Virus record (IMG/VR): IMGVR_UViG_3300023278_002893
Coordinates: 186,001-250,000 of that record
Strand: one strand, 5' to 3'
Length of the DNA stretch: 64,000 bases
The translations under genes and the position numbers were made by a program. Every line of letters starts with the position of its first letter. Position 1 is the stretch's first letter. Below are positions 4,005 to 64,000 of this stretch, piece after piece. The notes beneath the pieces were generated by a model. It had not been told where the DNA came from. It searched no databases and was given only the letters and a program-made list of their open reading frames with translations.

Positions 4005-4262
4005 TTATGCTTGTGATATTGGGGATTCCGGCGCGCAAAGGCCTAAGTTATTTAAAATAAATCCCTCAGGGCACTCAAGAGTGCCTACCGGTTCAGCCCC
4101 CTCCACATTAGTAATAGGGATACAAGAACCCGATTTCGGATCAAAGACTTCCTCAGGTCTACACTGCGGATGGAACTCCTGAGGATCAGTTATCTGACTT
4201 TTGTCAGACCATCCTCTTAGGATTTTCCCAAGTTGGCCGCGATGATCTGGCGAGCATGCCAC
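4005..4262 (-). CDS. Cys-repeat ORF, probable -1 frameshift extension of 4217..6559
   Basis: Two further repeats (CRPEEVFDPKSGSC, CPEGFILNNLGLC); lies in the -1 frame after G GGA AAA. Confidence 0.6.
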   Translation of the reverse strand: MACSPDHRGQLGKILRGWSDKSQITDPQEFHPQCRPEEVFDPKSGSCIPITNVEGAEPVGTLECPEGFILNNLGLCAPESPISQA

Positions 4263-14761: not shown

Positions 14762-15344
14762 TAATTTCAGACCCCCTCTCATCCAATCTTTGCCATCCAA
14801 TTTCCTCCGCAAGATCGCAAACGCTGAGAAAAAACTCATCCAAAGTACCGTTGTTCTCGATGATCTTGTAGTAGTCTGTGTAGTCCTGCATCGATGTCTC
14901 ACTAGAATGATTGACGCCGACAGTAACCCCACTTCCTTCCCGGGTCACCTTGACTACAACACCACCTACTTTTTTTATTTTTTCTGCTTCGTTCGGATAA
15001 CGCACATCTGAAATAACAAACCTACTAAAACCCTGCGCTCTAAGTCGAGGGATAGTAATATTAAGAACCGTATCAATCCAAATGTCAGGATAAATCTCCC
15101 GCATCTTCTCACCCAATCCCTGCATAATCTCTCGAGGTGTAAGATTGTATCTGGGATCCACTTTCTCTTTGACGGAAACAGGACCGTAACACTGCTCGTA
15201 CGAAAGTCCAAAAAGACTACTTGCTGTACTTTTTAGAGCATCGGCAAACGCTACCCTTTTAACCCCAGGACGTTCTTCCAGGTACTCTGCCGCCGTATCT
15301 TTACCCACCTGGGCAGTAACTCCTAATCCTAAAATATCAATCAT
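14754..15344 (-). CDS. Deoxynucleoside monophosphate kinase (T4 gp1-like)
   Basis: GKDTAA P-loop, FADALK, PREIMQ.LG, ISDVRYPNE, HSSE. Confidence 0.88.
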   Translation of the reverse strand: MIDILGLGVTAQVGKDTAAEYLEERPGVKRVAFADALKSTASSLFGLSYEQCYGPVSVKEKVDPRYNLTPREIMQGLGEKMREIYPDIWIDTVLNITIPRLRAQGFSRFVISDVRYPNEAEKIKKVGGVVVKVTREGSGVTVGVNHSSETSMQDYTDYYKIIENNGTLDEFFLSVCDLAEEIGWQRLDERGSEISG

Positions 15345-26824: not shown

Positions 26825-29800
26825 CTATATCAACGTCAGACTAAACTCGTCTGCTGTTCCGCTCTGTGTTGTGGTCTCCATCCAGACAAAGGAGTCAACT
26901 GGAATATTTGGATTGTCGAAACTCGTGATGACCTCTCCAGTATTTCCGCTGTGAGTTGTAGTTCCTCCGGTGATGACTTCTGTTCCTACTCCCGATCTGG
27001 TAGGATCGTGTCTGACCGTCCAGGTAGCTCCGAGTGCTCCCGTTCCTCTGATGGAACCGATCAGCTTCTGAACTGTTCTGGCTGCTGTAGTGTAGAAGAA
27101 GAAAACATCCTCTCCGTTGAAGAGGTTCTCTACTCCAAGATTGTAAGGACCACCTACTGTATCCACATAGTTCTTCGTAGCGAGATCGTCTGAAGCGACG
27201 GGATCGGCTCCACTTACTGTCGCACTGAATCCCCGAGTTCCATCGGCAAGAGCATACTGAGTATGATCATCATCGGGAAGACCGGTGAGTAATCCATGAT
27301 CTGTAATTCCTGCTCCACCTATTACTACTCCCCCTGGGAAGGAAGAGGGAGAAACTCCTCTCAGATCTGTATTGGCTATAATAGTCCAATTATTACTAGA
27401 CTGACGTCTAACGGTCAGACGTGATAGTAACCAACCCACTCCTGCATAGTCTCTGGGGATAGTATATAGAGCGGTGTTCTCAACATCATTGATAGCATTG
27501 GTGTTGTTGTTATAGCCGTCACCGGGGAGATTCAAAAACAGCTTGGTATCCGAATCATTCTCTGCTACTGCTCCCCACAAGACTACATTGAATCTGTCAT
27601 TTGCTCCGATGGACGAACCATCGCTATATGCTGTAATCTCTGACAGAGACTGGATAGTAGTATAGGGAGTAGTAAAGTCATTGAATACATAGATTAAATC
27701 AGCTCCAGAGGTATCGATGGTAGGTGTAGAATGAGTATGGAGCTGATAGATACTACCCGCTGCGACCTGAATAGTAATATCATCTGGAGTTGGTCCGGTA
27801 TCTACCGTAGTAGTCAGGGCTGTTCCAGTTTGCCACTCTGCGTATTGTGATCTGATTCTCTCACTGATAGCGTGGATATGACCAATACCTCCTCGTGAGA
27901 GAGGTTCGTGATTATGATCTGTATATGCGTGGAGTTTCAATGGTCCATCGGTTTGAACCGTGGGTTCTGTTTGAACTATTACTCTTGCTACTCTCGCATG
28001 TTCAGCTGCTGGGAATCCGCTGGTATTAGCAGTTAGAACAAGAGACCCTGCGCTTTCCAGTAGATATACCCAGTTTTCTTGTGGATTAATATCCGTTCCC
28101 GCAGCAGTTAGAATAACCGAATCCGGGACTGAGTGGGTGATATTTACCCCACTGATTTGAACAGTGTTGGTGCTCCCTCCGATTCTATCCAGAGTGAAAG
28201 TGATGTCTGCTCCATCGGAAGATACTGTGTATGTATTATCAGTCTCAGCGATGGTTCCATCATAAGCAAACTCTAAGTTTTCAAGGAAGGTGGTGTTACC
28301 ACTTAGTTCATTTAGGAAGGGAGTATTGATGGGGCTGACTAATATACTACCATTACTTACCCCAGAGGCAACAGCGAGCCCCATGAAGATTACTCTTTCA
28401 GTTCCTGTTGGTAGAACCTTTGTAAGTTCTCCTGGGGTATTGGAAACATAAAGTCTATCGCCTGGTGAAAATGCAGAAGTATCCACATCACGCACCAAAC
28501 CAAAGGTGGTTACATATCCATTACTATTGTTACTGATATCTTCAGTAGCAAGTCCGAAAGCTCCTGATGTGGGATCGGTTGCATCTGCTAATCCGACAAG
28601 GGGTCTGCCTGCCTGAATCCCTAGAATATTCACTGCGGTTCCGTCAGTTATAGTAGAACCGGTTGTATTCCGAGTCCTAACTAATTGCTCTTGACCTACC
28701 TGGAGATTTACACTACCTCCAGGCATACCAAGATTCAGAGTTCCATCATCATCGTTCCAGGATAGTCTACCCTCTGTCGGGGTAATACCATTAACCAGAT
28801 TGAAGTCTATCCATCCGACATCACCAATCCGATTATCCGACATATCTAGCTCACCTTGTAGGGTGCCGGATACACCCTGAATGTGGGTTCCTGCTATATC
28901 TCCTGCTACCGTCAGATTCTGAGCAATCCCCATTCCCGGAGTAGATCCTACAATTCCTGAGATTGTTACTCTTTCCACCCCTCCCCCAGTAAAACCGAGC
29001 ACTGCGTTACCCTTACGATACATCCCCGTGTTGTGCTGCTGCTTGAATGAAAAAGGAGCATCACTCGCATTCCCATCCCCCGCATGAACTCGCTGAACGT
29101 CTTCGATCTTGAAGGAGTTACATTCCAAATGTGAACCAAGGACGGGAGATAGATCTTGAACTATCTCGGTTAGAAATGTTCCAGATGCGGCGAGGAACTC
29201 ATCTCTGAATCCAGAAACTGTAATGTTTTGTCCCAATTCAGAGACACTTATTCCATCAGATCCTGAAATAATAACGTCACCCGTAATCGCATTTACTGAA
29301 TCAACATCAGAACTTTCGACAGCGTCTATCTGAGATTGAAGGGAACCAGAGGTGGCTACAAATTCATCTCTAAAACCGCTTATAGTTACAGTATCACTTC
29401 CTGAAATAACGGTATTGCCATCCAGTCCAAGTATCGCATCATTCTCATTTTTGGCGTATCGAGAGTGGTGGGCGTCTTCGGCTTCAGCGTGTGTTGTTAT
29501 ATCTGTGTCTATTTCAGAAGATAGGGAACCAGATGCCGCAACGAACTCTGCATAGAATCCACTAATAGTATCTACATTGGATCCAGAGACAACGGTTATT
29601 CCATCATCTCCTACAAGAGCGTTGGGAGTACTACCTGACCCTCCCCCGCCACCAGTGGAGGAAATAGTAATAGAGTTAGCCCCAGAAACTACTACAATGT
29701 TACTACCTGCAATAATAGCATCATTCTCATCCTTAGTATATCGGATGTGGTGCGCAGAAGTATCTGATGCGTGAGTGTTGATATCAGAATCAATCTCAGC

Positions 29801-31540
29801 AGCCAGAGTTCCGCTTGCGCTAACGAACTCGGTATAGAATCCAGACACGGTAATGGTTGAGGAACCAGAAATAACTGTAATCCCATCTGCACCTACAATA
29901 GCAGTCGAAGCGGCGTCTATTGAACTCTGTAAAGCACCTGATGCACTAACAAACTCATCTCTAAACCCGCCTATTGCTATAGCACTGGCACCACTAATAA
30001 CGGTTATTCCATTTGAACCTACAAGTGGAAGGCCAAAACTAGAACTAATGGCAATAGCGGGGGATTCTCCAACATAGTTTTCGGTTGGGTTCCCCGCTCC
30101 GGCGCTGTAGAGAGCGTCGATTTCATCTAAGGTCAGCGCTTTGTCCCAGAATAGAATTTGGTCCAGAAGACCACTAAACGGACGGTCGCCTCCACCACCG
30201 TTGGGTTGATTTCCAATACATGTGTTGATTGAAGCCGAAGTGGGAACAAACCCTGTCTTTGAGTCAGTCGCCACTTCGACACCGTCGAGATAAATTTTGT
30301 AAGTACTTCCGTTGTACCACGTGATTAAGTGGTACCATGTTCCAGTACTTAAAGCGGAAACAGATGCCTGCACCTGTGTTCCAGTACCTAACGTACCTGT
30401 TGTTAGTCTAAAATTAATGGTCGTTGAGTTAGGTATCCCAGCCATAAACACATGGTCCGCGGTACTAGTACCGTCCGCTTTGGACCAAATACGAGTATCA
30501 CCGGCAAATGAGTCAGAATTAAACCAACCACTGATTGAGAATTCCGATACATTTGGAACATCTAATGTTCCTATATTAAATCTAGTACCACCTGCCCCGT
30601 CAAAGTCGGCGGCCTGCCCGAAACCTGATTTCCCTGCAGTGTATGTAACCCCTCCCGCGATAGTACCGTCTTGGGAGCCGAAGGAATCGTCTGTATTATC
30701 TTCGAAATCGTAACCATTTGTTATATTCTGGTCGCCGGTAGTTGTTGTAACCGAGATCGACGCGTCTAATGCCTTGATCTTTTTAAACTCAAAAACGGGA
30801 CCTGTTTTTTGAAAAAATACGTCCTCGCCTAGGATTCCTATATTAGTACCAGATACAGCCAGGGATCCTGAAGCCGCTAGGAACTCCGCCCGGAAACCCG
30901 AAACCGTAGTTTCGCCCGCGGTGGGAGTTCCTGAGATAACAGTAATTCCATCTACACCCACCATCGCGTCCGAGACCGTACCGCCCCCACCTCCACCACC
31001 GCCCGCAGTGGAAGATATGGTAATAATGTTAGTTCCTGACACGACTGTAACATTACTGCCTGCCACGATAGCGTCGTTTTCGTCCTTAGTGTATCTGACG
31101 TGGTGCGCACTTGCGTCCGCGGCGTGTGTAATGATATCACCATCTATTTCCGAAGACAGGGTTCCAGAAGCGGCAACAAACTCTGTTCTAAAACCAGAAA
31201 CTGTGATTGTCTGGGATGCTGTCGAAACGACATTTCCATCAGTACCGTCTATTACAACCGCACCTACTACACTGTTTACGCTATCTACAGCACCTCCGCC
31301 CCCACCAACACCGCTAGTACTAATTTCTACAAAATTAGTTCCCGTAGTAACTACAATACCAGAGCCTGCGGTAATTAGTCCCTCTCCCGGAAAATAACTA
31401 TTGAAAGTTGTAACCAATTCGGTATCGTCACGCCCACCAGTTCCTGTAATAACTACCTCACCGAAAAATTCATTGAACTCTAGCTCACTGAGAAAATCCT
31501 CGTCCACTGATTGATGTTCTCTTATTCTAGTCTTTACCAT
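26825..31540 (-). CDS. Large tail-fibre/adhesin with internal repeats and a LamG (ConA-like) domain
   Basis: Repeats GFR.EF.AASG and H.....AHH.RY.K.ENDAI; LamG motifs FSISGWF, GTWYHLITWYNG...YLDG, FSGLLDQI; DHGLLTGL.DDDHTQY. Confidence 0.8.
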   Translation of the reverse strand: MVKTRIREHQSVDEDFLSELEFNEFFGEVVITGTGGRDDTELVTTFNSYFPGEGLITAGSGIVVTTGTNFVEISTSGVGGGGGAVDSVNSVVGAVVIDGTDGNVVSTASQTITVSGFRTEFVAASGTLSSEIDGDIITHAADASAHHVRYTKDENDAIVAGSNVTVVSGTNIITISSTAGGGGGGGGTVSDAMVGVDGITVISGTPTAGETTVSGFRAEFLAASGSLAVSGTNIGILGEDVFFQKTGPVFEFKKIKALDASISVTTTTGDQNITNGYDFEDNTDDSFGSQDGTIAGGVTYTAGKSGFGQAADFDGAGGTRFNIGTLDVPNVSEFSISGWFNSDSFAGDTRIWSKADGTSTADHVFMAGIPNSTTINFRLTTGTLGTGTQVQASVSALSTGTWYHLITWYNGSTYKIYLDGVEVATDSKTGFVPTSASINTCIGNQPNGGGGDRPFSGLLDQILFWDKALTLDEIDALYSAGAGNPTENYVGESPAIAISSSFGLPLVGSNGITVISGASAIAIGGFRDEFVSASGALQSSIDAASTAIVGADGITVISGSSTITVSGFYTEFVSASGTLAAEIDSDINTHASDTSAHHIRYTKDENDAIIAGSNIVVVSGANSITISSTGGGGGSGSTPNALVGDDGITVVSGSNVDTISGFYAEFVAASGSLSSEIDTDITTHAEAEDAHHSRYAKNENDAILGLDGNTVISGSDTVTISGFRDEFVATSGSLQSQIDAVESSDVDSVNAITGDVIISGSDGISVSELGQNITVSGFRDEFLAASGTFLTEIVQDLSPVLGSHLECNSFKIEDVQRVHAGDGNASDAPFSFKQQHNTGMYRKGNAVLGFTGGGVERVTISGIVGSTPGMGIAQNLTVAGDIAGTHIQGVSGTLQGELDMSDNRIGDVGWIDFNLVNGITPTEGRLSWNDDDGTLNLGMPGGSVNLQVGQEQLVRTRNTTGSTITDGTAVNILGIQAGRPLVGLADATDPTSGAFGLATEDISNNSNGYVTTFGLVRDVDTSAFSPGDRLYVSNTPGELTKVLPTGTERVIFMGLAVASGVSNGSILVSPINTPFLNELSGNTTFLENLEFAYDGTIAETDNTYTVSSDGADITFTLDRIGGSTNTVQISGVNITHSVPDSVILTAAGTDINPQENWVYLLESAGSLVLTANTSGFPAAEHARVARVIVQTEPTVQTDGPLKLHAYTDHNHEPLSRGGIGHIHAISERIRSQYAEWQTGTALTTTVDTGPTPDDITIQVAAGSIYQLHTHSTPTIDTSGADLIYVFNDFTTPYTTIQSLSEITAYSDGSSIGANDRFNVVLWGAVAENDSDTKLFLNLPGDGYNNNTNAINDVENTALYTIPRDYAGVGWLLSRLTVRRQSSNNWTIIANTDLRGVSPSSFPGGVVIGGAGITDHGLLTGLPDDDHTQYALADGTRGFSATVSGADPVASDDLATKNYVDTVGGPYNLGVENLFNGEDVFFFYTTAARTVQKLIGSIRGTGALGATWTVRHDPTRSGVGTEVITGGTTTHSGNTGEVITSFDNPNIPVDSFVWMETTTQSGTADEFSLTLI

Positions 31541-38476: not shown

Positions 38477-39546
38477 TAGTCCCTCCGTGGGTTGCTTTCG
38501 TATCCGTAGTTGGCGGACACCTGCATAAATTCAGCTTTGCGTTGTAGTTCTTTGATATCTTCAGCACCTGCATAAGTTAGTCCGCTTCTTAGACCTCCGA
38601 GGAGATCGTTAATGGTATCCTGTGCAGAGCCCGTCACCGGGGCCCAGAAGTCAGTTCCCTCAGCAACTGTCTTCTCCTTCAAACCCCCGTAGAAATCGTT
38701 CTGGAAATCCGCACTTGCCTGTCCTCTGTACTTAGCTTGTCTTACAGGAACTCCCTCAGAAATGAAAGAGCAGTCTTCTATTTTATCCCCTGTGGTATAT
38801 ACTGCATTACGTGGGTCTCTTTTTTCAGCAGCACTCTCCTCAGTCAGTGCAAATATTTTACCTATCATTACCGTACAAGCCCCTACCGCAAGAGCCTTTA
38901 CAATGTCCGAAGAGTTTCGAATCCCTCCGTCTGCAATAATTGGTACTCCAAGGTGTACAGCTTCATCCGCGCAGTTCTTAATCGCTGTAAATTGCGGGAC
39001 TCCGAACCCTGTGACGTTACGCGTAGTGCATGCAGCTCCTGGGCCGATACCAACTTTAACTGCATCCGCACCTGCATTAACAAGATCATGATAAGCACGC
39101 GCTGTGCATACATTTCCCGCGATGACTTCCAGGCTTGGACAAGTATTTTTAAGATAACTTATGGTATTAATCATTAACTCAGAGTGTCCATGGGCTACGT
39201 CCAATACTACGCCTTTTAAGTGATGCGCCTCGACAAATCTTTCTAATTCTTTAATACTCTCTTTACCTAAACCAGAACTTAAGAAACAGTTCGGAAAGTC
39301 TGACAACCACTTTATCTTCTGAGCAGAATCTGAAAATCTGTGAAATAAAGGAATTCCTCCATTCCCCACAACGACATGTGCAAGCTCCGTACCTATAACA
39401 GTATCCATGTTTGCAGGAATTAAAGGCAGTTCTATTTTTGTATTCTTTGTAAGCCACGTAGTTAATTGGGGCTCGGCCCTGCTACCGACATTACTATAAC
39501 GAGGTACTAAGCATACATCATCAAAAGTTAAACCTCTGCTTATCAT
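38476..39546 (-). CDS. guaB: IMP dehydrogenase/GMP reductase family enzyme (no CBS domain)
   Basis: LTFDDV.LVP, ANMDTV, DVAHG, GIGPGAACTTR, IIADGGI, LRSGLTYAG; start 39546. IMPDH versus GMPR not resolved. Confidence 0.85.
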   Translation of the reverse strand: MISRGLTFDDVCLVPRYSNVGSRAEPQLTTWLTKNTKIELPLIPANMDTVIGTELAHVVVGNGGIPLFHRFSDSAQKIKWLSDFPNCFLSSGLGKESIKELERFVEAHHLKGVVLDVAHGHSELMINTISYLKNTCPSLEVIAGNVCTARAYHDLVNAGADAVKVGIGPGAACTTRNVTGFGVPQFTAIKNCADEAVHLGVPIIADGGIRNSSDIVKALAVGACTVMIGKIFALTEESAAEKRDPRNAVYTTGDKIEDCSFISEGVPVRQAKYRGQASADFQNDFYGGLKEKTVAEGTDFWAPVTGSAQDTINDLLGGLRSGLTYAGAEDIKELQRKAEFMQVSANYGYESNPRRD

Positions 39547-40019
39547 GATGTACCTCCGTGATTTAATTCGCTCATTTCCAAATAACAACTATCCCTCTTC
39601 TCGGTGATTTCTTTAGGTAAAGTACTACCCTTTCCCCTCCCACCTTGAAACCGGGGAATCTTCATAAATCTATATGCTAGTTTTATCTGTTCTTTTTTAG
39701 TTACACAATAAGGGAATAGCAACTCTAAAATCTCTAATGTTTTATGGCTACAAACTGACCAGCCATATACTATCTTTCCTTTGACTGTTCGTCTTTTTAT
39801 TTCTAAACATTGCCCATCAAAAATCTCAGCAAGTTTTTCTATTGTGGGTTTGTGTGTCATTCTCACAGAAAGACGCAGTGTATAAGAAGGACTTCTTTCC
39901 CGTCTAGTTTTTGTCTTAGCTCCAGGATAAACTTTACCAACACAATTTACCTTTTGAATGAAAATACTACCTTCTCCATCCACTATTCCCGCAGCCCATG
40001 CTAAATCTGTTTTCTTCAT
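39543..40019 (-). CDS. LAGLIDADG homing endonuclease, free-standing
   Basis: LAWAAGIVDGEGSI; P....KKEQ; stop overlaps the guaB start (ATGA). Confidence 0.88.
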   Translation of the reverse strand: MKKTDLAWAAGIVDGEGSIFIQKVNCVGKVYPGAKTKTRRERSPSYTLRLSVRMTHKPTIEKLAEIFDGQCLEIKRRTVKGKIVYGWSVCSHKTLEILELLFPYCVTKKEQIKLAYRFMKIPRFQGGRGKGSTLPKEITEKRDSCYLEMSELNHGGTS

Positions 40020-40993: not shown

Positions 40994-42310
40994 TTACTCC
41001 ATAGACGCAGCGAGAGTAAGTCCATTACTCACCGCGTGCAGTGGATCCGCTGCGTGCCTAACCTCTGAAATCTCGATAGGCATGTTCACCGCGCCCAGGG
41101 CCTGTTCGAACTTCTGAATGAAGCCTCGCGGTAGAGATGTACCTCCTGCCACTATAAGTGGGACAGGATCCCTGAACTTGGGTAGAGATGGAGAACTTGC
41201 TAGATCGTGTGCTATGTTCTCTAGGGTATATACTAGGAGGTTACCGTAATACACAGAGATCGCAGCTTGGATCTGATTTCCCGGCTCCGGATTCATAAGA
41301 TCTAGATCTGGGTGTTCCTTCTCCTGCTGGATAATGCTAGGAGTAAGGTTAGTTGCCGTGGCTGCCTGTTGATCTACCCAGTCCCCCGATCTAGAGGTAC
41401 TAAAGGTAACCACAGGATCACCTGCGGAAAGAACAGCCACGTTCATCATTCCCGCACCGCAAGATATTGCGATGCCTGTAAGTCCTTCGTCAAGCAACTC
41501 CGAATAAGCAAGAGCTTCCGCTTCATTCATCGGTTGGGCATCAAATCCTAAACTATCAATAAAAGACTTGATCATGTCCTGGTGAAAGAGTTGATCGAAT
41601 TCAGCATCAATGGGTTTGGCAGGGACAGAGAATACCAAAACCTCATTCTCGGTCTTAGGCTCGCCTACAATCCTCTTAATGAGTTCTTGTAGGATAGGAA
41701 ATGCTTCACTTTCCTGGGGAGCTAAAACTCCACGATGCATGGGTCTCCGAGTGGTGATGTGTCTTTCGTTAGCCATTAGGAATGCATCTTCACCGATGAC
41801 ATAAAAACCGTCGTCCTTTTCTATGTAGGGGGCTTTTCGATCATCTAACCCCTTCTTGAGAATGCTTCGATTGATCTTAGATTTCGGCTCTATTTTGATA
41901 AAGCAATCTCGCATCTTCTTGAAACCAATCTTACCATCATTACCAAAGCGTCCGGCAACGAGGAAAGAGGTTCCGACATCAAGACCTACTCCGTTTGGAA
42001 CATCTTCATCAGGCATAATGAACTCCTTCTTCTTGAGAATTTCTCTCTTCTGAATATCTACAGGCGGTTGAAAGGTAGGTACTACTACCTCTTCTTCCTG
42101 TTCTTCCCCCTCCTGCATTGGAGGTGGAGCAGGTTTTTTCTTTGTATCTTTTTTGCGCCGTTTCTTTCCCACTTGCCGACGTACATCTTCCTTGTGACGT
42201 GTCCTTACGTTCCCGGAAGGAAGTTTAGACGCATCAATGGTTCGGATACCGTCTTTACCTGTCTTAACTACTCCCTTCGCCTCCAAATCCCGAACGCGTG
42301 GATCCGCCAT
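40994..42310 (-). CDS. Actin-like ATPase (MreB/MamK/ParM superfamily) with a charged N-terminal extension
   Basis: Phosphate-1 GLDVGTS, connect-1 MNEAEA, phosphate-2 SCGAG, GDWVD, adenosine IVAGGTS. Confidence 0.88.
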   Translation of the reverse strand: MADPRVRDLEAKGVVKTGKDGIRTIDASKLPSGNVRTRHKEDVRRQVGKKRRKKDTKKKPAPPPMQEGEEQEEEVVVPTFQPPVDIQKREILKKKEFIMPDEDVPNGVGLDVGTSFLVAGRFGNDGKIGFKKMRDCFIKIEPKSKINRSILKKGLDDRKAPYIEKDDGFYVIGEDAFLMANERHITTRRPMHRGVLAPQESEAFPILQELIKRIVGEPKTENEVLVFSVPAKPIDAEFDQLFHQDMIKSFIDSLGFDAQPMNEAEALAYSELLDEGLTGIAISCGAGMMNVAVLSAGDPVVTFSTSRSGDWVDQQAATATNLTPSIIQQEKEHPDLDLMNPEPGNQIQAAISVYYGNLLVYTLENIAHDLASSPSLPKFRDPVPLIVAGGTSLPRGFIQKFEQALGAVNMPIEISEVRHAADPLHAVSNGLTLAASME

Positions 42311-42840
42311 TACTTAGATCCCTTTATCTCCCGCAGGCGCCTCAACTTAGCGGCAGCATCTTCCTCCCCCTCAGACTCCTCCGCAAGTGTGTCTCCGTGA
42401 CTAATACTAACCTCAGAATCTTTATGAGCAATAGAGGTTAGGCTGGTGTGCTTCATACCAGGTCGAGACGTGGGTTTTACAAGACCTGTTCCCACCCCAC
42501 CACCTGAGGAATTGGATATAGAGGACACCACTTCTGTCAGCGCCTCCTTAAGCGCGATAGCAAGTGTATCTGCATCAATGCCATTAGACTCAGCGGGTCT
42601 CCCAAGCAATTCGTTCAACTCCAATGCGAGCTTAATTTGCTCGACCTGCTCGGCATCCGCTTCGTGAAGCCTACCCTCCTTAATAAGCTTGAGTAGATTC
42701 TCTCTGTTATACTTACGCCCTCTTTGTTCTTGGGCGGCTCTAGTTCGCCTTTCGGCATCTGCAACACCCGGCACTGTTTTATCTCCCTTCCAAAATGTCA
42801 AGAAGTTTATCACTCCCCGCGCTCTCGACCTCAGACTCAT
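42310..42840 (-). CDS. Hypothetical protein coupled to the actin gene (candidate adaptor)
   Basis: TAATG overlap; helical N-half, flexible linker, C-terminal AAAKLRRLREIK helix. Confidence 0.55.
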   Translation of the reverse strand: MSLRSRARGVINFLTFWKGDKTVPGVADAERRTRAAQEQRGRKYNRENLLKLIKEGRLHEADAEQVEQIKLALELNELLGRPAESNGIDADTLAIALKEALTEVVSSISNSSGGGVGTGLVKPTSRPGMKHTSLTSIAHKDSEVSISHGDTLAEESEGEEDAAAKLRRLREIKGSK

Positions 42841-43222
42841 GATTACCTCCGCTACCCGAACCGTTTTCCAGCTTTACAATATGTGATTTCATTTCTGCTA
42901 TTTCTCCAGCATGCTTGTTCACTCTCTTCTTATTACCAGAAAATAAATCATAAGACTTGGAAGCCGTCATATAAGTAGCGACCGCAATGAGTAATTGACT
43001 CATCCCAAACTTCCCCACCTCCACAACATTCCCATCTAAAACTTCGAGGATCTCCAGTTCCGGGGTATGCCAAAACCACCACAGAGGGCAAACGACTAAC
43101 GCAACGACAAAAGACACAACATCAGCCTTATACCTGAAGGAGAAGTTCTTCTTCAAGAGCTGAGTTATGAATATGATTATCGGAACCGCTGCTGCGTTGC
43201 CTAAGAGGGCAAACTCCTCCAA
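42779..43222 (-). CDS. Membrane protein with ~3 TM segments (holin-like)
   Basis: Three hydrophobic stretches and a charged C-terminal tail. Confidence 0.55.
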   Translation of the reverse strand: MEEFALLGNAAAVPIIIFITQLLKKNFSFRYKADVVSFVVALVVCPLWWFWHTPELEILEVLDGNVVEVGKFGMSQLLIAVATYMTASKSYDLFSGNKKRVNKHAGEIAEMKSHIVKLENGSGSGGNHESEVESAGSDKLLDILEGR

Positions 43223-46318: not shown

Positions 46319-46696
46319 CTATAAGCTTTCTTTAAACTGGAAAGTTCCTAGTACCTCAAGTCGATCACTGAATATTTTGACAGCCTTACGAAATAACCTC
46401 TCAACAGCATCTGCATTTTCAAAAGTAAGATTCGCGTATTCCACTATTTGAGACTCTCTATTACGACTAAAGTCTGAAAATTTCAAAGCTCTCTTTTTGA
46501 TTACACCAGGACGCTCGATTTTTTCTCTTATCTGGAAAATTTCCAGATAGAACTCGTATCCAAACTGTATGTGCTCTTCAATGATTTTATGTTCTTCATC
46601 TGTGACGTCCAAACTTAAGTTTATGGAATACAATCGTCGCAGATCCGACTCCAGATCTCTATTACGTGTATAACTCTTTTTAATGTTAATTTTCAT
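46319..46696 (-). CDS. Hypothetical protein
   Basis: ORF track. Confidence 0.45.
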   Translation of the reverse strand: MKINIKKSYTRNRDLESDLRRLYSINLSLDVTDEEHKIIEEHIQFGYEFYLEIFQIREKIERPGVIKKRALKFSDFSRNRESQIVEYANLTFENADAVERLFRKAVKIFSDRLEVLGTFQFKESL

Positions 46697-47400
46697 TTTT
46701 CTTTCCCCTTTGCCTGAAATTCTTTTTCAGTCATTGTGCCCTTCCTTAAATTACAACTTGGGCAGGTTAGTGCTATATTTTCTTTAGTGTTACTTCCATT
46801 ACGACTGAGTGGTGTTTTGTGATCTGCGTGATAATCTGTAGGTAGTTTGGTTCCACAATAATAACACCTATTGTTCTGTATTTTCAATAAATCTTCTAAA
46901 TCTCCAATTGTAAACCAATTACTTCTTCTACCCTTCCTACGACGCCTCAACAAACTATGAACTTTATAATATCCCAAAGTTCTAGATTTACCATGGGTAG
47001 TTACTGCTTCTAATTGTCCGCAGCCGCAACTTCTTGTTTTCCCAGATCTTAATGTTGCGCCTTTAGTGACGTGAATGTTTCCACAATCACAAAGGCATTT
47101 GAACCTCATGTTTCCCCACTTGTCTTGATGAGAAAATTCTAACACTTTCAACTTTCCAAAACGACCACCCTTACGTACAGGTTTAAGTTGTCTTTTGTGG
47201 GTAGACTCTGCGATGAAGCACCCACAACTTCTAGTGTGTCCTCCACGAAGAGATTGACCTAGGACCTTCTTTTCTTTTCCACAATCACAAATACAATCCC
47301 AGGTAGTTCTATTTGAAAGTTTAGAACTGGATAACCCCACAACCAGAAGTTTGCCAAAACGTTTTCCAGTATGATCGTATTTTAACGGTCTCTTACTCAT
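46693..47400 (-). CDS. HNH homing endonuclease, paralog of 14033..14761
   Basis: GKRFGKL.V/C.CDCG/SCGC twice; CYYC...HADHKTPLSRNG.N...CPSCN. Confidence 0.85.
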   Translation of the reverse strand: MSKRPLKYDHTGKRFGKLLVVGLSSSKLSNRTTWDCICDCGKEKKVLGQSLRGGHTRSCGCFIAESTHKRQLKPVRKGGRFGKLKVLEFSHQDKWGNMRFKCLCDCGNIHVTKGATLRSGKTRSCGCGQLEAVTTHGKSRTLGYYKVHSLLRRRRKGRRSNWFTIGDLEDLLKIQNNRCYYCGTKLPTDYHADHKTPLSRNGSNTKENIALTCPSCNLRKGTMTEKEFQAKGKEK

Positions 47401-57786: not shown

Positions 57787-57891
57787 GGTAATCCTCGTGT
57801 GTTAGCAAAGTGGCAGCTAAATGGTTGATATCGAAAGGTTTAGTGCGATATCCTTAGCAACATACTAACTATATCGCAGTATCCGCAAACA

Positions 57892-57920
57892 ATTATAAGT
57901 TCTGCCGCGCGTAATGTCAA
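57892..57920 (-). promoter_or_regulatory. Consensus sigma70 promoter
   Basis: TTGACA-17-TATAAT. Confidence 0.85.
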
Positions 57921-58107
57921 TGTAACCCCTATAATAGTAGGGTGTGGTAAAACCACTTATATAAGGCTAATAGTGAGGTAATACAGATACTTATACCTCC
58001 AAGCCAATAACCTAGGTTCCAGGATTTCTCACATATATAACACTCCTCTCCGAGCCAATGGATAAGGATCAGCCAGAGCAGAGACACCGCTATGAGCGCC
58101 AGATAAA

Positions 58108-58326
58108 TCAATCTTCTATGTCCTCGTCCAGTTCGTCCGAGGTCACACCGACCAGGAGACGAATGGCCTCGAATAGATTTTTCAAATCGGTGGAAGAAAC
58201 ATATCCCTCCCAGATTTTATACTTGTTCCAGTAAAGACTGGATCTTCCCCTTCTGTCAGTATGTAGTTCGTACATTAACTGCTCCTTAATGGTCCAAGAA
58301 CTTTCATGTTCTGTGCGATCAGCCAC
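58108..58326 (-). CDS. Hypothetical protein
   Basis: ORF track. Confidence 0.4.
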   Translation of the reverse strand: MADRTEHESSWTIKEQLMYELHTDRRGRSSLYWNKYKIWEGYVSSTDLKNLFEAIRLLVGVTSDELDEDIED

Positions 58327-58583
58327 TCCCCGCCTTGGCTGTTCGGTCTCTTGAAACTAACGAAGTCGCGGATCTCAACTTTGTACCACACCCTACCTTT
58401 CGTCGAGAGGTGAGGGGCGCTCGGTTCGCGACCAGCGTGCCAACCGGGACGGTGCGCAAAGCCTTTTGTTGGAATGTCCTCAGCGGGGAGCCACACCCCG
58501 ATCGGGATCCGTTGTCGTGTTCCGATGAACAGAGGCCCGATGGTACCGTCCTTGCGTTGTTTAAACAATTTGTAAGCTTTCAT
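58275..58583 (-). CDS. Phage hypothetical protein (AYKLF...PLFI...GFA.RPGWH)
   Basis: RBS GAGGAG before ATG 58583. Confidence 0.65.
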   Translation of the reverse strand: MKAYKLFKQRKDGTIGPLFIGTRQRIPIGVWLPAEDIPTKGFAHRPGWHAGREPSAPHLSTKGRVWYKVEIRDFVSFKRPNSQGGEWLIAQNMKVLGPLRSS

Positions 58584-58599
58584 CTTTCTCCTCAAACCA

Positions 58600-58628
58600 A
58601 TAATACGAGAAGTGTTCCCCCGTGTCAA
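58600..58628 (-). promoter_or_regulatory. sigma70-type promoter
   Basis: TTGACA-17-TATTAT. Confidence 0.8.
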
Positions 58629-58700
58629 GCACTATCTTCCCCTTTTCACTCGGGGTGGTTTATGATCTATATAGTGGCAAAGAAAGTGATTCCAACGAGA

Positions 58701-58729
58701 ATAATAAGAGAGAATAGAGAGGATGTCAA
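58701..58729 (-). promoter_or_regulatory. sigma70-type promoter
   Basis: TTGACA-17-TATTAT. Confidence 0.8.
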
Positions 58730-58987
58730 ATAAATGACTAGGAGGTCAATATACATCTTCCCCCTTGAGATATAATGGGAGATAATATTGCCTTAGGGAC
58801 CCTAGCATAGTTACCTCACCTTGTGAGGTAATCATTGTTTATACCCCCCTCCTCCGTCGAGGGATATACACATTGATTAACTATGCTACACGCGCTACCA
58901 CTTGTTACCTCACTGCGTGAGCTAATAATTCTCGCTTCGCTCGAATTAGACATGTCGTCTACTTCCAGCAAGCTGAAAGGAGACACC

Positions 58988-59026
58988 ATGTCACGACACG
59001 GAGGTCGCAAGCTCCCTCGTCACTGA
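58988..59026 (+). CDS. 12-aa micropeptide MSRHGGRKLPRH
   Basis: RBS GAAAGGAG 5 nt before ATG. Confidence 0.4.
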   Translation: MSRHGGRKLPRH

Positions 59027-59089
59027 GCTTGTCTAACGCAGCACTCATGCTGCACCGCACGGAGAGCTACGCTCTACCGTGCAGGAGGT

Positions 59090-59284
59090 ATGACTATGTC
59101 ATCCCCCACGCTCGTGCTCCGTGTTCCGACCTGCGACGCTGTCGATTGCATCGACCCCAGCGCAGGGTGCTACCCCGCACTCGATGTCTTCGAAGATATC
59201 GAGCTGTGCGTACATCACGAGAGTGAGTACGCCACTGCGGGTCGCATCAATGAGAGCGATCGACTCGTCGATCACTCTTCCTGA
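59090..59284 (+). CDS. Small Cys/His acidic protein
   Basis: RBS AGGAGGT; followed by a G/C hairpin. Confidence 0.6.
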   Translation: MTMSSPTLVLRVPTCDAVDCIDPSAGCYPALDVFEDIELCVHHESEYATAGRINESDRLVDHSS

Positions 59285-59454
59285 TGCTTGGGGACCCCCC
59301 TCTGGGGGGTCCCTGTGGTTACCTCTCCGAGGTACCCTTCTATCCCTCGCTTCGCTCGGGTACCCCATCACCACGTGGATCTCGCTGCGCGAGCCCTAGT
59401 TGCATCACTTCGTGATACAATCATTTCTCGCTTATCACTCGAAAGGAGTATGAC

Positions 59455-59628
59455 ATGCCCAGTCTCGTCTTCGACTTTGACTGTTCCTGTGAGGTCCTCC
59501 CTTCGGGGGACCTCTGGTGCTGCGATGTGTGCAGCACCGAAGCTGACCCTTGGGGTCAGCTTGCTACCGAAGAATCCGATCGGATTCTCGGACACAACAC
59601 CTTCCTCGATATCTCTCGAAAGGAGTAG
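59455..59628 (+). CDS. 57-aa Cys-rich protein MPSLVFDFDCSCEVLPSGDLWCCDVC... (not in track)
   Basis: RBS GAAAGGAG 6 nt upstream; its 3' end supplies the RBS of the next gene. Confidence 0.6.
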   Translation: MPSLVFDFDCSCEVLPSGDLWCCDVCSTEADPWGQLATEESDRILGHNTFLDISRKE

Positions 59629-59631
59629 ATC

Positions 59632-59754
59632 ATGCTCGAACAATTCGCTATCGCTCTTGTCCCCACCATCGCGTTGCTCTTGGTGGGTCGCTTGATCTGG
59701 ATCACCGATCCAGAGGTCAAGCGACTGCGCAAAGCTGAGCAGAAGCTCAGCTAG
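59632..59754 (+). CDS. 40-aa single-TM protein MLEQFAIALVPTIALLLVGRLIWIT... (not in track)
   Basis: RBS GAAAGGAG; hydrophobic helix and basic tail. Confidence 0.6.
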   Translation: MLEQFAIALVPTIALLLVGRLIWITDPEVKRLRKAEQKLS

Positions 59755-59760
59755 CGCATC

Positions 59761-59789
59761 GGACCCCCCTAACGGGGGGTCCTCTTTTT
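59761..59789 (+). terminator. Intrinsic terminator-like hairpin
   Basis: GGACCCCCC-TAAC-GGGGGGTCC followed by TCTTTTT. Confidence 0.7.
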
Positions 59790-59954
59790 ACAGCACCGAC
59801 CCGCTTCGCTAAGTCGGTCTTGTTCATTTACTCGTGAGTACCCCCTTCGGGGGTACCAACGAGCACCGCTCGTTCCTCGCTCTCGTCGTTCCTCCTCACT
59901 AGTTGCATCACTTTGTGATACAATCATTTCTCGCTATCGCTCGAAAGGAGATCC

Positions 59955-60185
59955 ATGTTTATCATTCTTCTCGATTCCTCGAAGAACGAACTCCGCGTCG
60001 TCCGTGCTGACTCTGTCAGCGACTCCGGGACGCGGGTCGTTGTGGTTCCTCACCACAACGGTCACTCGTACGACTTCGAACTCCCTCCGGGAGTCGAAGC
60101 CTTCGCAGACCTCGCTACCTTCGACGATGTCGAAGCTGCGTGGTCGTCGGTTCGCACCGACTTCTGCCCCTCGCTCCACCCCTAG
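59955..60185 (+). CDS. Small hypothetical protein
   Basis: RBS GAAAGGAG after a repeat module. Confidence 0.65.
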   Translation: MFIILLDSSKNELRVVRADSVSDSGTRVVVVPHHNGHSYDFELPPGVEAFADLATFDDVEAAWSSVRTDFCPSLHP

Positions 60186-60304
60186 CGGGGTGGGGTGTCC
60201 CCCTTCGGGGGTAGTTACCTCACTCTGTGAGGTAATACTTCTCTGGGTACTAGCGTACCCTTTGAAGTATTATCTTTCTCGTTAATCTCTCGAAAGGAGA
60301 CTCT

Positions 60305-60784
60305 ATGCGTTGCTCGTTCTGTAACGATCCCCGTGGGATCATCATGGTTGATGGTATCCCCGAGCCCTGCTGTGATGAGATCATCACGCAGCAAGTCCGC
60401 GAAGTACGCGGCATCTGTGTCAATTGTGGGGAATCCCACACTCGCATGAACGAGGGTGTAGACACCCTCTCCGCCATGTGCTCCGATGAGTGCCTCACCG
60501 AAGCCATGGATCGCATCGAAGCAATCGCGCTGCGCGACGATTGTGGCGGTGAGATGCCCGACCAGGAGGTCATGGACCTCCATGACTCCGTCGATCGTAT
60601 CGACGCAGCCAACCTCGCGTGGTACCGCCACGCGGGTCAGTACATCGACAACGGTGTCGATGACTGTCTCGGTACTCCTCCCTTCTGGTTGGAGTACTCG
60701 ATAGAGCGCGACGCTCTGGAGAGCGATGCACGCATCGCTAAGCTCCAGAACGACGAGCACAAGTACGGGTGTATCCCGTTCTAG
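60305..60784 (+). CDS. Acidic Cys-rich (zinc-binding) hypothetical protein
   Basis: CSFC..CC..CVNC..CSDEC; RBS GAAAGGAG. Confidence 0.7.
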   Translation: MRCSFCNDPRGIIMVDGIPEPCCDEIITQQVREVRGICVNCGESHTRMNEGVDTLSAMCSDECLTEAMDRIEAIALRDDCGGEMPDQEVMDLHDSVDRIDAANLAWYRHAGQYIDNGVDDCLGTPPFWLEYSIERDALESDARIAKLQNDEHKYGCIPF

Positions 60785-60869
60785 TGCTCTGGTCCCCCTA
60801 GCGGGGGACCTACCGCTCCGCTCTCGCTTCGCTCACTAGTTCCTCCACTTCGTGAAGGAGGTCACTCAC

Positions 60870-60944
60870 ATGACCAAGTTGATCCTGTGCACCTACGCTC
60901 CGCTGCTCTACTTGCTTGCGGAATTCGCTTCACTCATCCCTTAA
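60870..60944 (+). CDS. 24-aa hydrophobic peptide MTKLILCTYAPLLYLLAEFASLIP
   Basis: RBS AAGGAGGT. Confidence 0.5.
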   Translation: MTKLILCTYAPLLYLLAEFASLIP

Positions 60945-60962
60945 CCAAGAAGGAGCTACGCT

Positions 60963-61016
60963 ATGGATGATCTCGACCGCGACATCCAGGACGTCATTGA
61001 CGACCTGTGCGAATAG
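60963..61016 (+). CDS. 17-aa acidic peptide MDDLDRDIQDVIDDLCE
   Basis: RBS AAGGAG 7 nt upstream. Confidence 0.45.
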   Translation: MDDLDRDIQDVIDDLCE

Positions 61017-61524
61017 ACCCATGTGGGTAGGAGTGCGTTACCGCGCACTCCTGCCCACCCGCTTCGCTCGCTACGCTCGCTCGCTCCTCTAAGAGCAAGG
61101 GAGGACTCTGTTGAGTCCTACTCCAGTACCGCTCGTCCCTCGCTCTCGCTTCGCTCACTCCCCTTCGGGGATAGTCCCATCACTTCGTGATCGGTAGTAC
61201 ATTTTTTTCGCTCATCGCTCAAAAAGGAGTCCTCCATTGGATGGATGACACCCCACAGCTACCTGCCCGAGCACGGCTTGGTAGCACCACGGGGGCCGTA
61301 GTGCTCCCTCCGCTGCGAGACGCAGTACAAGCAGTGACCTGCTTGTGGCGGAGGTTGATCAGCTCGCTTCGCTCGCTAACGGATGCTCCGCATCCTTAGA
61401 GACCCGGAGCGTCCCCCCTACGGGGGGTAGTTTCACCGCTGCGCGATGAAGTATCGGTTCTTGCGAACCTCGTTGTTAGACCACAGTGGTCTGATGCAGG
61501 GTTCGCTTGATAGGAGGACATGAC

Positions 61525-61881
61525 ATGTCCAATGCAGTAAAGACCACGATCAAGAAGTTTTCGTTCACGAAGTGGATCAGTGAGATCGAAGGTTCGGGTG
61601 CTCGCGTACTCGGATTCTGTGAGATGACGGTCTGCGTCGATGGTCTGGAGTTCACGTTCAGTGACCTGAAGGTTCGCGTGAATCAGAAGGGTGAGCATCA
61701 CCTGTGCGCACCGAGTCGTCGCTACAAGAACTCCGAAGGTGCCTGGAGGACGTCGAGCGCGTACAAGTTCGACAATTCGACGTATGCTGCTCTGCGCAGT
61801 TTCGTCTACGGTCGCGACGAAGTGAAGGTCGCGATCGACGAAGCCGCGGATCTCGAAAAGGAGATTCCGCTGAGCGCGTAG
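61525..61881 (+). CDS. SpoVG-like nucleic-acid-binding protein
   Basis: GFCEMTV...FTFSDLKV....GEHHLCAPSRRYK..EG.W matches the SpoVG pattern; RBS AGGAGG. Confidence 0.7.
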   Translation: MSNAVKTTIKKFSFTKWISEIEGSGARVLGFCEMTVCVDGLEFTFSDLKVRVNQKGEHHLCAPSRRYKNSEGAWRTSSAYKFDNSTYAALRSFVYGRDEVKVAIDEAADLEKEIPLSA

Positions 61882-62104
61882 TACATAGCAGTACCTCTAA
61901 GTAGGGGTACTGCTAGTCCCACCCCACCGCTTCCCGGGGGGTGGGACCTCGCTCTCTTTCTGCTATCACGCGTGCTCATTGAGAAATGAAGGACTCTGAT
62001 GAGTCCTCCTTTATTGACGTTCGCTTCGCTCTCTCTCAGTTCCTCCGCTTCGCTCCCCCCTTCGCTATAGTCTCCGCATTCTCTGGATGCGGTTACTATT
62101 ATAA

Positions 62105-62134
62105 GAGACCCTCTAACGAGGAGTCTCTTTTTTT
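62105..62134 (+). terminator. Intrinsic terminator-like hairpin
   Basis: GAGACCCTC-TAAC-GAGGAGTCTC followed by a T7 run. Confidence 0.65.
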
Positions 62135-62497
62135 ATTGACGCGCGCTGTTGCTCGGTGGATTCGTTCGGTACTGTTCATTCGGTGGTTGATTCGTTTACT
62201 CTCATTTGTTAGGGCACCACCCCAGTAGACGAAACTAATTACGGAGATATCAATTCCTTACGGAAACGCTGATTTACTCGTCGTCGCTGTGCTCCTCGTT
62301 GTTCCTTCTTTTTTTGATCTTTCATCTCGGTGCACCATTCGTAGAGATATCTATGGATGCACGCCCGTCGGATACGTAAGTACTTGCAATACTCCGACAG
62401 TGCTTTATCGATACGTCTAGGTAGTTCCTAGCGGACGAGATGGGAGATCTTTTTTCGCGGCCGCTCAAAAAAGCCTATTACAAGGAGATTAGAAACA

Positions 62498-62628
62498 TGG
62501 AACACATCCTCAAGAAGATGGCTGTACCCAACATCTTGCACTGCGCAGAACTAGTGGTTCTGACCATCGTCGTGCATTTGGCCTCAGGATTGGTATTCTT
62601 ACCATTATTCATCCCGAGGCAAGAATAA
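62498..62628 (+). CDS. Small membrane peptide MEHILKKMAV... (start approximate)
   Basis: RBS AAGGAG; hydrophobic C-half. Confidence 0.45.
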
Positions 62629-63516
62629 ACCCAACCCCGAAGAAGATAGGAGATCAAACCCATGTTCTACACAATACTACTAATGGTACTGAAAGAATAC
62701 AAGGACAGCAACAATCCATTCACCTGAGAGACCCCTCAGTTGAGTTAGACCACCCAGGAGGGATGGGACACTGGTAGGTGGTGGTCAGCTTTTACCAGGC
62801 GGTGACATCATTTTGCTCGGCGGACAAATCAATAGTAATTTCAAATAGATAGAGTAAATATGTAGGGCTCTGACGTTACTACAGTAGGGGGTTTCGCGCG
62901 TCCCTGTCCAGGTGACTCATTCATTAGGAGATCGATCTCTGGGTGAAACCCTTCTGTATTGCTTCTTACGAATTATTCACTATACTCAGAATTTTCACCC
63001 GCCGGATAAAACACCCAATATCACCCTGTACTCAAACTGAATAAGGCTAGAACCCCCCTAGACAAGAAGAACTCCAGTAGTGCCCTCTGTTAGAGCCAAT
63101 TGTATTACTGCTTTAGCAGATTCATTGCAAGCATGGTGATGATTTACCTGTTGTACTCCCAGTATGCCTCTGTATCGATCCATGCTCATCGATCGATGTA
63201 GTTGATTTCATTGAGGAATTTAGTGTAGTGAAATGGTAAATGCCAATAGGTCGATCAAGTGGGTGTGATCGAGTACCCCGTATTAGTTGAATAGGTCGGT
63301 CTGTGTTGGTGCTTTGGCACCCCATGAGGGGTCTAGGTTGTTCCTTCATTTTGATGTTCTGTGCTCCCATGTGCTTGGTTTCGTTGATGATTGGAGCCGG
63401 GGGTGGAGTGTGAGGGGAACGTGTAGGAGAAGCGAAGTGTGAGCGTCTCAGGTACCACCTGTGAGAGCTAGTGAGTACAGAGGAGAGTTAATCCATTACC
63501 GGTTTCTACCGGGAAC

Positions 63517-63834
63517 ATGCCTATTAGAGGCGGGAGAACTATTATGTTGGAGAAGAGACAGCCGAGAGGAAAGACAATAAGATGCTGGAGCAGGAACGGT
63601 GAGCCCCTCGATCCCGGTGCAGAACTCCACATGGAGCTGTTAAAACTAGAACACGTGTACTGGCGCAATGAGCTGACAGCGTGCGACGATTGCGGCACAG
63701 CTATACCCAATCGCGATCTTCGACTTACTCCATATGGATTGGTATGTGAGGATTGCAGAGAGACCGTCAAGAAGACAAGAATCAACTTGGGTAGGTTTCT
63801 ACGTAAATGGGAACCTAGCGGAGAGGCATGCTAG
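63517..63834 (+). CDS. Zinc-ribbon hypothetical protein
   Basis: CDDCG...CEDC. Confidence 0.55.
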   Translation: MPIRGGRTIMLEKRQPRGKTIRCWSRNGEPLDPGAELHMELLKLEHVYWRNELTACDDCGTAIPNRDLRLTPYGLVCEDCRETVKKTRINLGRFLRKWEPSGEAC

Positions 63835-64000
63835 ACTGTTTTATCCGCCGCTGAAAAATGCCAATAACCCTGGGAGGGGAAAGGAGAGAATCATGGACAG
63901 AACACTACTGGAAGCATCTGGACTGGCCTGTCATCGTAGTACCTGTGAGGAGCAGGCTCAATGGGAAGGCTACGCTGACACCTACAGGCCTATTACAGGA

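Follow-up and report, generated by a model that had tools for sequence, protein, structure and literature searches.

A Volactin-family actin of an uncultivated phage and an upstream adaptor-like protein whose C-terminal helix is predicted to bind the actin's groove

Is the actin-like gene of a large uncultivated phage part of a cytoskeletal system, and if so, does this system segregate DNA, shape the host cell or organise the infection? The locus lies in a 64,000-nucleotide stretch (positions 186,001 to 250,000 of IMG/VR record IMGVR_UViG_3300023278_002893; here called the window) of a 298-kb phage genome. The original prediction described a phage actin with complete actin-fold motifs behind an extension of about 100 aa rich in K, E and P, an overlapping 176-aa upstream gene ending in an amphipathic helix after a flexible linker, and a preceding protein with three transmembrane segments (3-TM). 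The three genes were found as described, and the observation was confirmed with two corrections. The features are as follows (positions in the window).

40994..42310, minus strand: actin-like ATPase of the Volactin family, 438 aa, stop codon at 40994-40996
42215..42310, minus strand: conserved N-terminal module of the actin extension, residues 1-32 (helix 4-11 plus hairpin 15-25)
41990..42214, minus strand: rest of the extension, a variable K/R/P/E-rich disordered linker (about residues 33-81), then a conserved D-I-x-K-R-E...K-K-E-F-x-M segment leading into the core
42310..42774, minus strand: adaptor-like protein, 154 aa from GTG 42774 (176 aa if read from ATG 42840, i.e. 42310-42840), its stop overlapping the actin ATG (TAATG)
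42313..42357, minus strand: C-terminal amphipathic tail helix of the adaptor, residues 140-154, predicted to bind the actin
42779..43222, minus strand: three-segment membrane protein, 147 aa, TTG start behind AGGAGG, with a charged cytoplasmic C-terminal part and an invariant tail D-K-L-L-x-I-L-E; membership of the system is uncertain

The first correction concerns the start of the upstream gene. Its homologues are mostly 153-157 aa long and begin with M-P-G-V-A-D. Hence the real start is probably GTG 42774 (RBS GGAAGGGAG), which gives 154 aa and removes the 62-nt overlap with the 3-TM gene. The second correction concerns the actin motifs, which are not all canonical. The core begins with phosphate-1, G-L-D-V-G-T-S, at residue 109; phosphate-1 (D-x-G-T-S), the N-E-A-E catalytic region and the adenosine motif G-G-T-S are standard. 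In contrast, phosphate-2 reads S-x-G-A-G-M-x-N where MamK has D-I-G-A-G-T-T-D, and this is conserved in all relatives examined. The loop lacks the usual Asp and Thr, with S283 and M288 in their place, so nucleotide handling may be unusual. Furthermore, the extension of about 105 aa holds 16 K, 10 R, 11 E, 9 D and 11 P in 108 residues, but is not just low complexity: residues 1-32 and about 82-105 are conserved. A K-G-V-V-x-T-x-x-x-G-I-R-V-I-D-A-S-K-L block was found in 18 long-form homologues, and the module occurs only in the clade that also has the soluble adaptor. AlphaFold gave a pLDDT of about 70 for this module and below 50 for residues 31-41 and 49-95.

The family of the actin is clear. 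The match to Pfam PF25216 (Volactin) reached 221.9 bits (2e-65) against a cut-off of 35, covering residues 108-435 and profile positions 3-321 of 321; in a search of the full record it was found again with 222.6 bits. MreB_Mbl scored only 30.7 bits over residues 169-315, and MreB chains of the PDB matched at E 0.004-0.1 with 16-20% identity. The AlphaFold core is confident, and the best Foldseek matches were MamK and MreB (TMt 0.65-0.70). The classification thus rests on Pfam and fold search. Volactin (VolA, HVO_2015) of Haloferax volcanii belongs to the same sequence family over the whole actin core and forms dynamic filaments in vivo whose tips touch the membrane (PMC10869688), which fits the end-tethering role proposed below for the adaptor. 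The protein examined here is phage-encoded, carries the N-terminal extension and has a dedicated upstream adaptor. The host is probably bacterial, as indicated by SLT, a bacterial-type clamp loader and Shine-Dalgarno sites here and by RecA and DnaB in sister phages. No volactin-binding partner is known in Haloferax. A non-polymerising ASKHA ATPase (chaperone- or EutJ/PilM-like), with its groove permanently occupied by a partner peptide, was also considered. The phosphate-2 loop, non-canonical across the family, and the large surface covered by the predicted partner (128-132 contacts), as by a sequestering peptide, would fit this reading. It is regarded as unlikely, since the founding member of the family forms filaments and the best structural matches are filament formers, whereas Hsp70s match poorly.

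The adaptor-like protein has no Pfam or PHROG family. A profile search of 1.84 billion representatives with the adaptor alignment found only 37 proteins, all of the same family or fragments of it, with no fusions or distant relatives; a comparison of language-model features gave a best score of 0.77, which is uninformative. AlphaFold predicts helices at 4-33, 41-57 and 68-87, a disordered stretch at 88-139 and a helix at 140-152. Co-folding with the actin and conservation of the neighbourhood had been named beforehand as checks, and both were carried out. The co-fold places the C-terminal helix in the hydrophobic groove between actin subdomains IA and IIA, with about 25 preceding residues running along the actin surface. 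The ipSAE values were 0.82, 0.81 and 0.82, the best of three controls reached 0.58, and the mark was reached by 58 of 80 solved complexes and 2 of 110 mismatched pairs. The runs agree in at least 93% of contacts, and the partner's pLDDT is at least 73. K143, L144 and L147, which are invariant, and I150 touch actin residues 269-277, 432-437, 122 and 126-133 with an expected error of 0.9-1.5 A; the best contacts are K143/L144/L147 and the conserved actin residues Y269, L273, L277 and L433. However, these values are the model's own confidence, and solved actin-peptide complexes may be remembered by it. The groove is the place where ParR binds ParM and WH2 motifs bind actin.

The gene pair recurs in other uncultivated phages. 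More than 100 full-length homologue clusters of the actin were found, and at least 324 IMG/VR stretches encode related actins. In the 80 loci fetched, the gene directly upstream nearly always ends in the same tail, K-L-x-x-L-K. A search with the tail pattern matched 58 of 1150 distinct ORFs, of which 54 lie directly upstream of the actin, 2 are separated from it only by an inserted gene and 2 lie elsewhere. An HMM of the membrane-type adaptor hit 68 loci, 66 of them directly upstream of the actin. The N-terminal part of the adaptor varies: it is a single membrane helix in most loci and a soluble domain here. Soluble adaptors of other clades end in the same tail. The tail of this window's clade aligns end to end with those of the membrane-type adaptors, but this homology is statistically weak (hhalign P 0.0016, probability 16%). 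A resemblance between the actin's N-terminal module and the I-D-D-x-K-F motif of membrane-type adaptors, seen by eye, was dropped, since hhalign gave nothing (P 0.5). In a quick IQ-TREE analysis the deep branching among the phage clades was unresolved, so that the ancestral adaptor type cannot be named.

It remains uncertain whether the 3-TM protein belongs to the system. Hydrophobic segments were found at about 4-20 and 35-51 and a weaker one at 66-88, and the loop charges fit an N-out/C-in topology. The adaptor and 3-TM genes are present upstream of the actin in all 8 long-form loci, and 73 homologue clusters of the 3-TM protein lie on the same contigs as the adaptor and actin. But this co-occurrence is limited to one closely syntenic clade; the soluble-adaptor clades labelled L003 and L012/14/25 have no such neighbour. 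It is possible that the protein is simply a holin, or another unrelated membrane protein kept beside the actin pair by synteny, and that the system has two genes. The topology with a charged C-terminal domain fits this, and the language-model features are nearest to phage membrane proteins and Phage_holin_5_2 (score 0.85, 178 shared features), which is only a lead. On the other hand, no Pfam holin hit was obtained at E up to 1, the SLT gene is 4.3 kb away, and the surroundings are replication and nucleotide genes. The extreme C-terminus is invariant at L140, I143 and L144 and resembles the adaptor tail by eye; the extreme C-termini align with hhalign, but not significantly (P 0.13, probability below 1%).

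Gene order (adaptor, then actin), translational coupling, a tail predicted in the same groove as that of ParR on ParM and a basic first helix of the adaptor could suggest a ParMRC- or AlfAB-type system (ParM/ParR, AlfA/AlfB, Alp7A/Alp7R), partitioning the phage genome as a plasmid prophage, with the adaptor binding a centromere and the actin pushing copies apart. This explanation is considered very unlikely. In agreement with the original prediction, which had seen no centromere-like repeat nearby, no repeat arrays were detected in 39.5-46.5 kb; the only tandem repeat in the window is a 33-nt array at 4919-4951. The adaptor is predicted all-helical without an N-terminal, ribbon-helix-helix strand and matches no DNA-binding family in Pfam. 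No tyrosine-integrase or ParB match was found in the record, which CheckV rates 100% complete. In most related phages the adaptor is a membrane protein with no room for a DNA-binding domain. Moreover, the actin belongs to a different family.

The cassette of this window lies among genes for clamp loader, pol III delta, NT5C and GMP reductase. In the short-form phages gp32-like SSB, RecA, dUTPase or RuvB, 5'-3' exonuclease and DnaB helicase were found as neighbours. However, gene context in phages is only a weak guide to function. As another possibility, membrane-tethered filaments could change host cell shape or block division, for example to enlarge the cell before lysis, independently of phage DNA. 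Volactin affects cell shape in Haloferax (PMC10869688), most adaptors are membrane anchors, and the nearest solved folds are the membrane-associated MreB and MamK. This reading is doubtful, as the recurring neighbours are replication and recombination genes and not envelope genes, the adaptor of this clade is soluble, and no link to peptidoglycan synthesis partners was seen.

In our opinion the locus encodes a cytoskeletal pair of a Volactin-family actin and a translationally coupled adaptor. The analysis establishes the family assignment, the conservation of the gene pair and of a C-terminal tail (core K-L-x-x-L-K/R) on the gene directly upstream of related actins in several phage clades, and, by structure prediction, the actin fold, whereas the position of the tail in the groove is predicted. 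Nucleotide hydrolysis, binding of the adaptor, polymerisation, by analogy with the Haloferax protein, and the biological role are inferred from sequence and modelling alone. In this view, the tail would couple filament ends or monomers to whatever the N-terminal part of the adaptor holds. In most phages this part is one membrane-spanning helix with the tail in the cytoplasm, which would make a membrane tether; in this window's clade it is a soluble helical domain for which no cargo could be named, the actin has gained its N-terminal module, and the 3-TM protein with a similar-looking tail lies just upstream. As the cassette lies among replication and recombination genes in separate clades and this genome shows no lysogeny or partition genes (no tyrosine-integrase or ParB match), the most likely role is the spatial organisation of the infection, above all of membrane-associated phage DNA replication, rather than plasmid-like segregation. 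We hold this explanation with moderate confidence. Thus, the proposal of an actin-based positioning, segregation or cell-shape system with a tail-binding adaptor was partly supported: the phage actin and the adaptor-like behaviour of its neighbour are supported, but a ParM/AlfA-like segregation role is disfavoured.

Comparable functions are known from other phages. AlpC and AlpA of the Corynebacterium prophage CGP3 are the closest functional precedent, a phage-encoded actin with a co-transcribed adaptor, expressed early and needed for efficient phage DNA replication (PMC4446434). The parallel is functional only. AlpA binds a DNA site in its own promoter; nothing comparable was found here. CGP3 is an integrated prophage; this 298-kb phage gave no tyrosine-integrase match. 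Replication of phi29 depends on host MreB and the phage membrane protein p16.7 (as summarised in PMC4446434), a phage membrane protein plus an actin-like cytoskeleton organising membrane-associated phage DNA replication. phi29 borrows the MreB of its host, and the phages examined here bring their own actin. The PhuZ spindle of nucleus-forming jumbo phages likewise serves intracellular organisation, but is a tubulin. No tubulin gene is present in this genome, which fits the contrast with PhuZ drawn in the original prediction.

Phage cell biology currently rests on a few systems, chiefly the PhuZ spindle, the chimallin nucleus and AlpC. An actin of a family so far studied only in one haloarchaeon is now found in uncultivated phage contigs, nearly always with a small partner that shares one short tail and carries different anchors. 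The gene pair was not described in any paper found. None of 50,697 deposited phage genomes has a close copy (two uncultured huge phages at 33-34% identity), and PHROGs has no matching family; the system has therefore escaped cultured-phage work. It suggests a simple design, tail into groove, with the anchor choosing the target, and offers a way to ask how phages without a tubulin spindle organise replication in space. More speculatively, and with doubt, the phages may carry a previously undescribed, widespread actin machine, in which a universal groove-binding tail is fused to exchangeable anchors (membrane helix, coiled coil or the soluble domain seen here) and tethers growing filament ends to the membrane and to a cargo, so as to position replicating phage DNA. 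Cellular Volactin genes occur in haloarchaea and in Myxococcota-type loci such as those labelled L086 and L087. The same principle may explain how cellular volactin filaments attach to the membrane by their tips, and the tail motif could point to the volactin-binding factors in archaea.

A promoter and terminator scan of 39.5-46.5 kb marked no boundary inside the three-gene run: promoter-like sites were at chance level, and the minus-strand hairpins lie inside the actin ORF. No alternative genetic code was needed. A scan of genome contigs gave only four MAG contigs; those labelled Altiarchaeales and Flavobacteriales carry the phage cassette and are probably phage contigs placed in those bins.

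The window covers bases 186001-250000 of a 297,725-bp IMG/VR virus record, which is rated 100% complete by CheckV. The genes are densely packed on the - strand and include a large terminase, a bacterial-type clamp loader and pol III delta, an SLT transglycosylase and homing endonucleases. The record is an uncultivated jumbo phage, and the SLT, clamp-loader and Shine-Dalgarno features point to a bacterial host. The endonuclease genes are the following:
39543-40019; 46693-47400; 14033-14932: a LAGLIDADG endonuclease gene and two HNH endonuclease genes.
The first two sit between genes that are adjacent in the relative L002 and therefore look like mobile insertions.

The observation underlying the original prediction was confirmed, with a correction to a start codon. 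All three ORFs are present at the stated coordinates (40994-43222), and the ATG of the actin overlaps the stop codon of the upstream gene as TAATG. However, the upstream gene is better read from GTG 42774, giving 154 aa. Of 58 homologue clusters, most are 153-157 aa long and begin M-P-G-V-A-D. In addition, a GGAAGGGAG site precedes the GTG, and this start removes the 62-nt overlap with the membrane-protein gene. The membrane protein has segments at about 4-20 and 35-51 and a weaker one at 66-88, with loop charges that fit N-out/C-in. No centromere-like repeats occur.

Residues 108-435 of the actin match Pfam Volactin (PF25216) at 2e-65 and 222 bits against a cut-off of 35. In contrast, MreB_Mbl scores only 30.7 bits, no PHROG family matches, and sequences of the PDB match only weakly. 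An AlphaFold model (pLDDT 77.6, core mostly above 85) matches MamK and MreB best, with TM 0.65-0.70 and 16-20% identity, whereas the best matches among UniProt viral models have TM 0.6 or below. Phosphate-1, the N-E-A-E region and the adenosine motif are canonical. Phosphate-2 differs from the usual form:
41444-41485 (actin residues 276-289): phosphate-2 loop, S-x-G-A-G-M-x-N in place of D-x-G-x-G-T-T-D; MamK has D-I-G-A-G-T-T-D.
This replacement of Asp and Thr is shared by all relatives examined, including probable cellular ones. The N-terminal extension consists of three parts, a conserved 32-aa module (helix plus hairpin, pLDDT about 70), a variable K/R/P/E-rich disordered linker and a conserved lead-in to the core.

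More than 100 clusters of full-length long-form homologues (60-85% identity) were found on metagenomic contigs of up to 296 kb. A profile scan of IMG/VR revealed at least 324 stretches encoding relatives. Of the 80 that were kept, 7 are long-form and 73 are short-form, the latter with about 333 aa at 42-53% identity on contigs of up to 461 kb. Deep nodes remained unresolved in a quick tree. Among 50,697 deposited phage genomes, only two uncultured huge phages match, at 33-34% identity. In L088 (LR745208.1, a 485-kb uncultured phage) the 207-aa gene at 3325-3948 overlaps the start of a distant actin (34% identity) and ends in a loosely similar basic tail (A-L-K-A-V-R-K-K...), whereas no such tail is seen in L089 (LR756511.1). 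Hence, the cassette may extend to huge phages.

A search of species-representative genomes gave four MAG contigs. Two of these, from Myxococcota/Deltaproteobacteria (L086, actin at 4884-6053; L087, actin at 4809-5990), have a different, probably cellular context. Their actin relatives show 34-36% identity, carry an N-terminal extension of about 60 aa and are preceded by a STAS-like gene of 101-120 aa and coiled-coil genes, but by no tail-bearing adaptor. This is possibly a cellular bacterial Volactin-like operon. Furthermore, the same three-gene phage module at 69-75% actin identity was found on contigs filed in archaeal MAG bins, namely L084 (contig WJJK01000141.1, labelled Candidatus Altiarchaeales MAG) and P0101 (labelled Nitrososphaera sp.). 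These are most likely phage contigs binned by mistake and should not be read as indicating an archaeal host.

In all 8 long-form loci the 154-aa and 147-aa genes lie upstream of the actin. In one sub-clade, represented by the loci L009 and L010, a 255-aa Laminin_G_3 (concanavalin-like) gene is inserted between adaptor and actin at about 5219-5986, which breaks the translational coupling but keeps both genes. In the short-form loci the gene at position -1 encodes a protein of about 100 aa with one N-terminal membrane helix followed by basic residues, a linker and a conserved C-terminal region ending K-L-A-Q-L-K-K-M-K-G or similar. An HMM of this protein hits 68 loci, 66 of them directly upstream of the actin. 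In clades where the -1 protein is soluble (loci L003/L011; L012/L014/L025), and in locus L039, it still ends in the same tail. A regular expression for the tail matches 58 of 1150 distinct ORFs in these loci, of which 54 lie directly upstream of the actin, 2 are the adaptors of L009 and L010, and 2 are elsewhere.

The adaptor of the window ends A-A-K-L-R-R-L-R-E-I-K-G-S-K, with K143, L144 and L147 invariant. Profile-profile comparison with the membrane-type family aligns only the extreme C-termini of the two families and is weak (P 0.0016, probability 16%). Common descent of the tails is plausible but not proven. A profile search of 1.84 billion representatives revealed no relatives of the adaptor family beyond its own clade.

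Binding of the tail was examined by co-folding of actin 100-438 with adaptor 98-154. The ipSAE was 0.82, 0.81 and 0.82 against a best control of 0.58; the mark was reached by 58 of 80 solved complexes and 2 of 110 mismatched pairs. The runs agree in at least 93% of contacts, and the pLDDT of the partner is at least 73. The model supports binding, but does not show it. As our own alignments were used, the calibration holds only roughly, and solved actin-peptide complexes may also be remembered by the model. The predicted contacts of lowest error join K143, L144, L147 and I150 to actin 269-277, 432-437, 122 and 126-133, which is the groove between subdomains IA and IIA. These actin positions are conserved. 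Residues 114-138 of the adaptor run along the actin surface in the model.

No tubulin, no tyrosine integrase and no ParB were found in the genome. The cassette lies between clamp loader, pol III delta, NT5C and a deoxyribosyltransferase-like gene on one side and a cupin and GMP reductase on the other. In short-form phages it lies between gp32-like SSB, RecA and dUTPase or RuvB on one side and 5'-3' exonuclease and DnaB helicase on the other. The replication and nucleotide-metabolism context therefore recurs across clades that otherwise share little synteny.

The pair is inferred to work like an actin plus adaptor module of the ParM/ParR or AlpC/AlpA kind, but it is not a member of those systems. 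The DNA-binding adaptor domain and the centromere, two defining features of ParMRC, were both looked for and not found. The anchor is interchangeable and is usually a membrane helix. The original interpretation as an actin with a coupled adaptor for positioning, segregation or cell shape is partly supported. Everything functional is inferred, including binding by the tail, which is predicted only. We infer that filaments are coupled by the tail to the membrane or, in this clade, to an unknown cargo, and further that they organise phage DNA replication in space. This echoes AlpC and the case of phi29 p16.7 and MreB (PMC4446434), and the tip-anchored volactin filaments of Haloferax (PMC10869688). 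Manipulation of host shape is the main functional rival to this reading. The 3-TM protein may be a third component, as its tail is invariant, but it may equally be a holin-like neighbour. The papers on volactin that were considered concern Haloferax or are general reviews, and the founding paper never mentions phages or viruses. In the open-access literature searched, studies on actin or MreB in phages and jumbo phages comprised AlpC, reviews on PhuZ and unrelated work; none described this cassette.

Further regions of the window are the following:
57800-64000: about 6 kb with no ORF longer than 181 aa and a GC of 0.52-0.57 against about 0.44 elsewhere.
4217-6559: a 780-aa protein with a chitin-binding peritrophin-A (CBM_14) match.
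26825-31540: a 1571-aa protein with a Laminin_G_3 domain.
In the first region the + strand carries 4-5 copies of an element of about 37 nt with inverted half-sites (GTTACCTCAC..GTGAGGTAAT), followed by TCTCGAAAGGAG and an ATG, plus GC-rich hairpins. No Rfam family or tRNA was found there. It looks like a block of small oppositely oriented genes, each with the same promoter or operator. The two large proteins are probably virion or host-recognition proteins, and CBM_14 is unusual in a phage.
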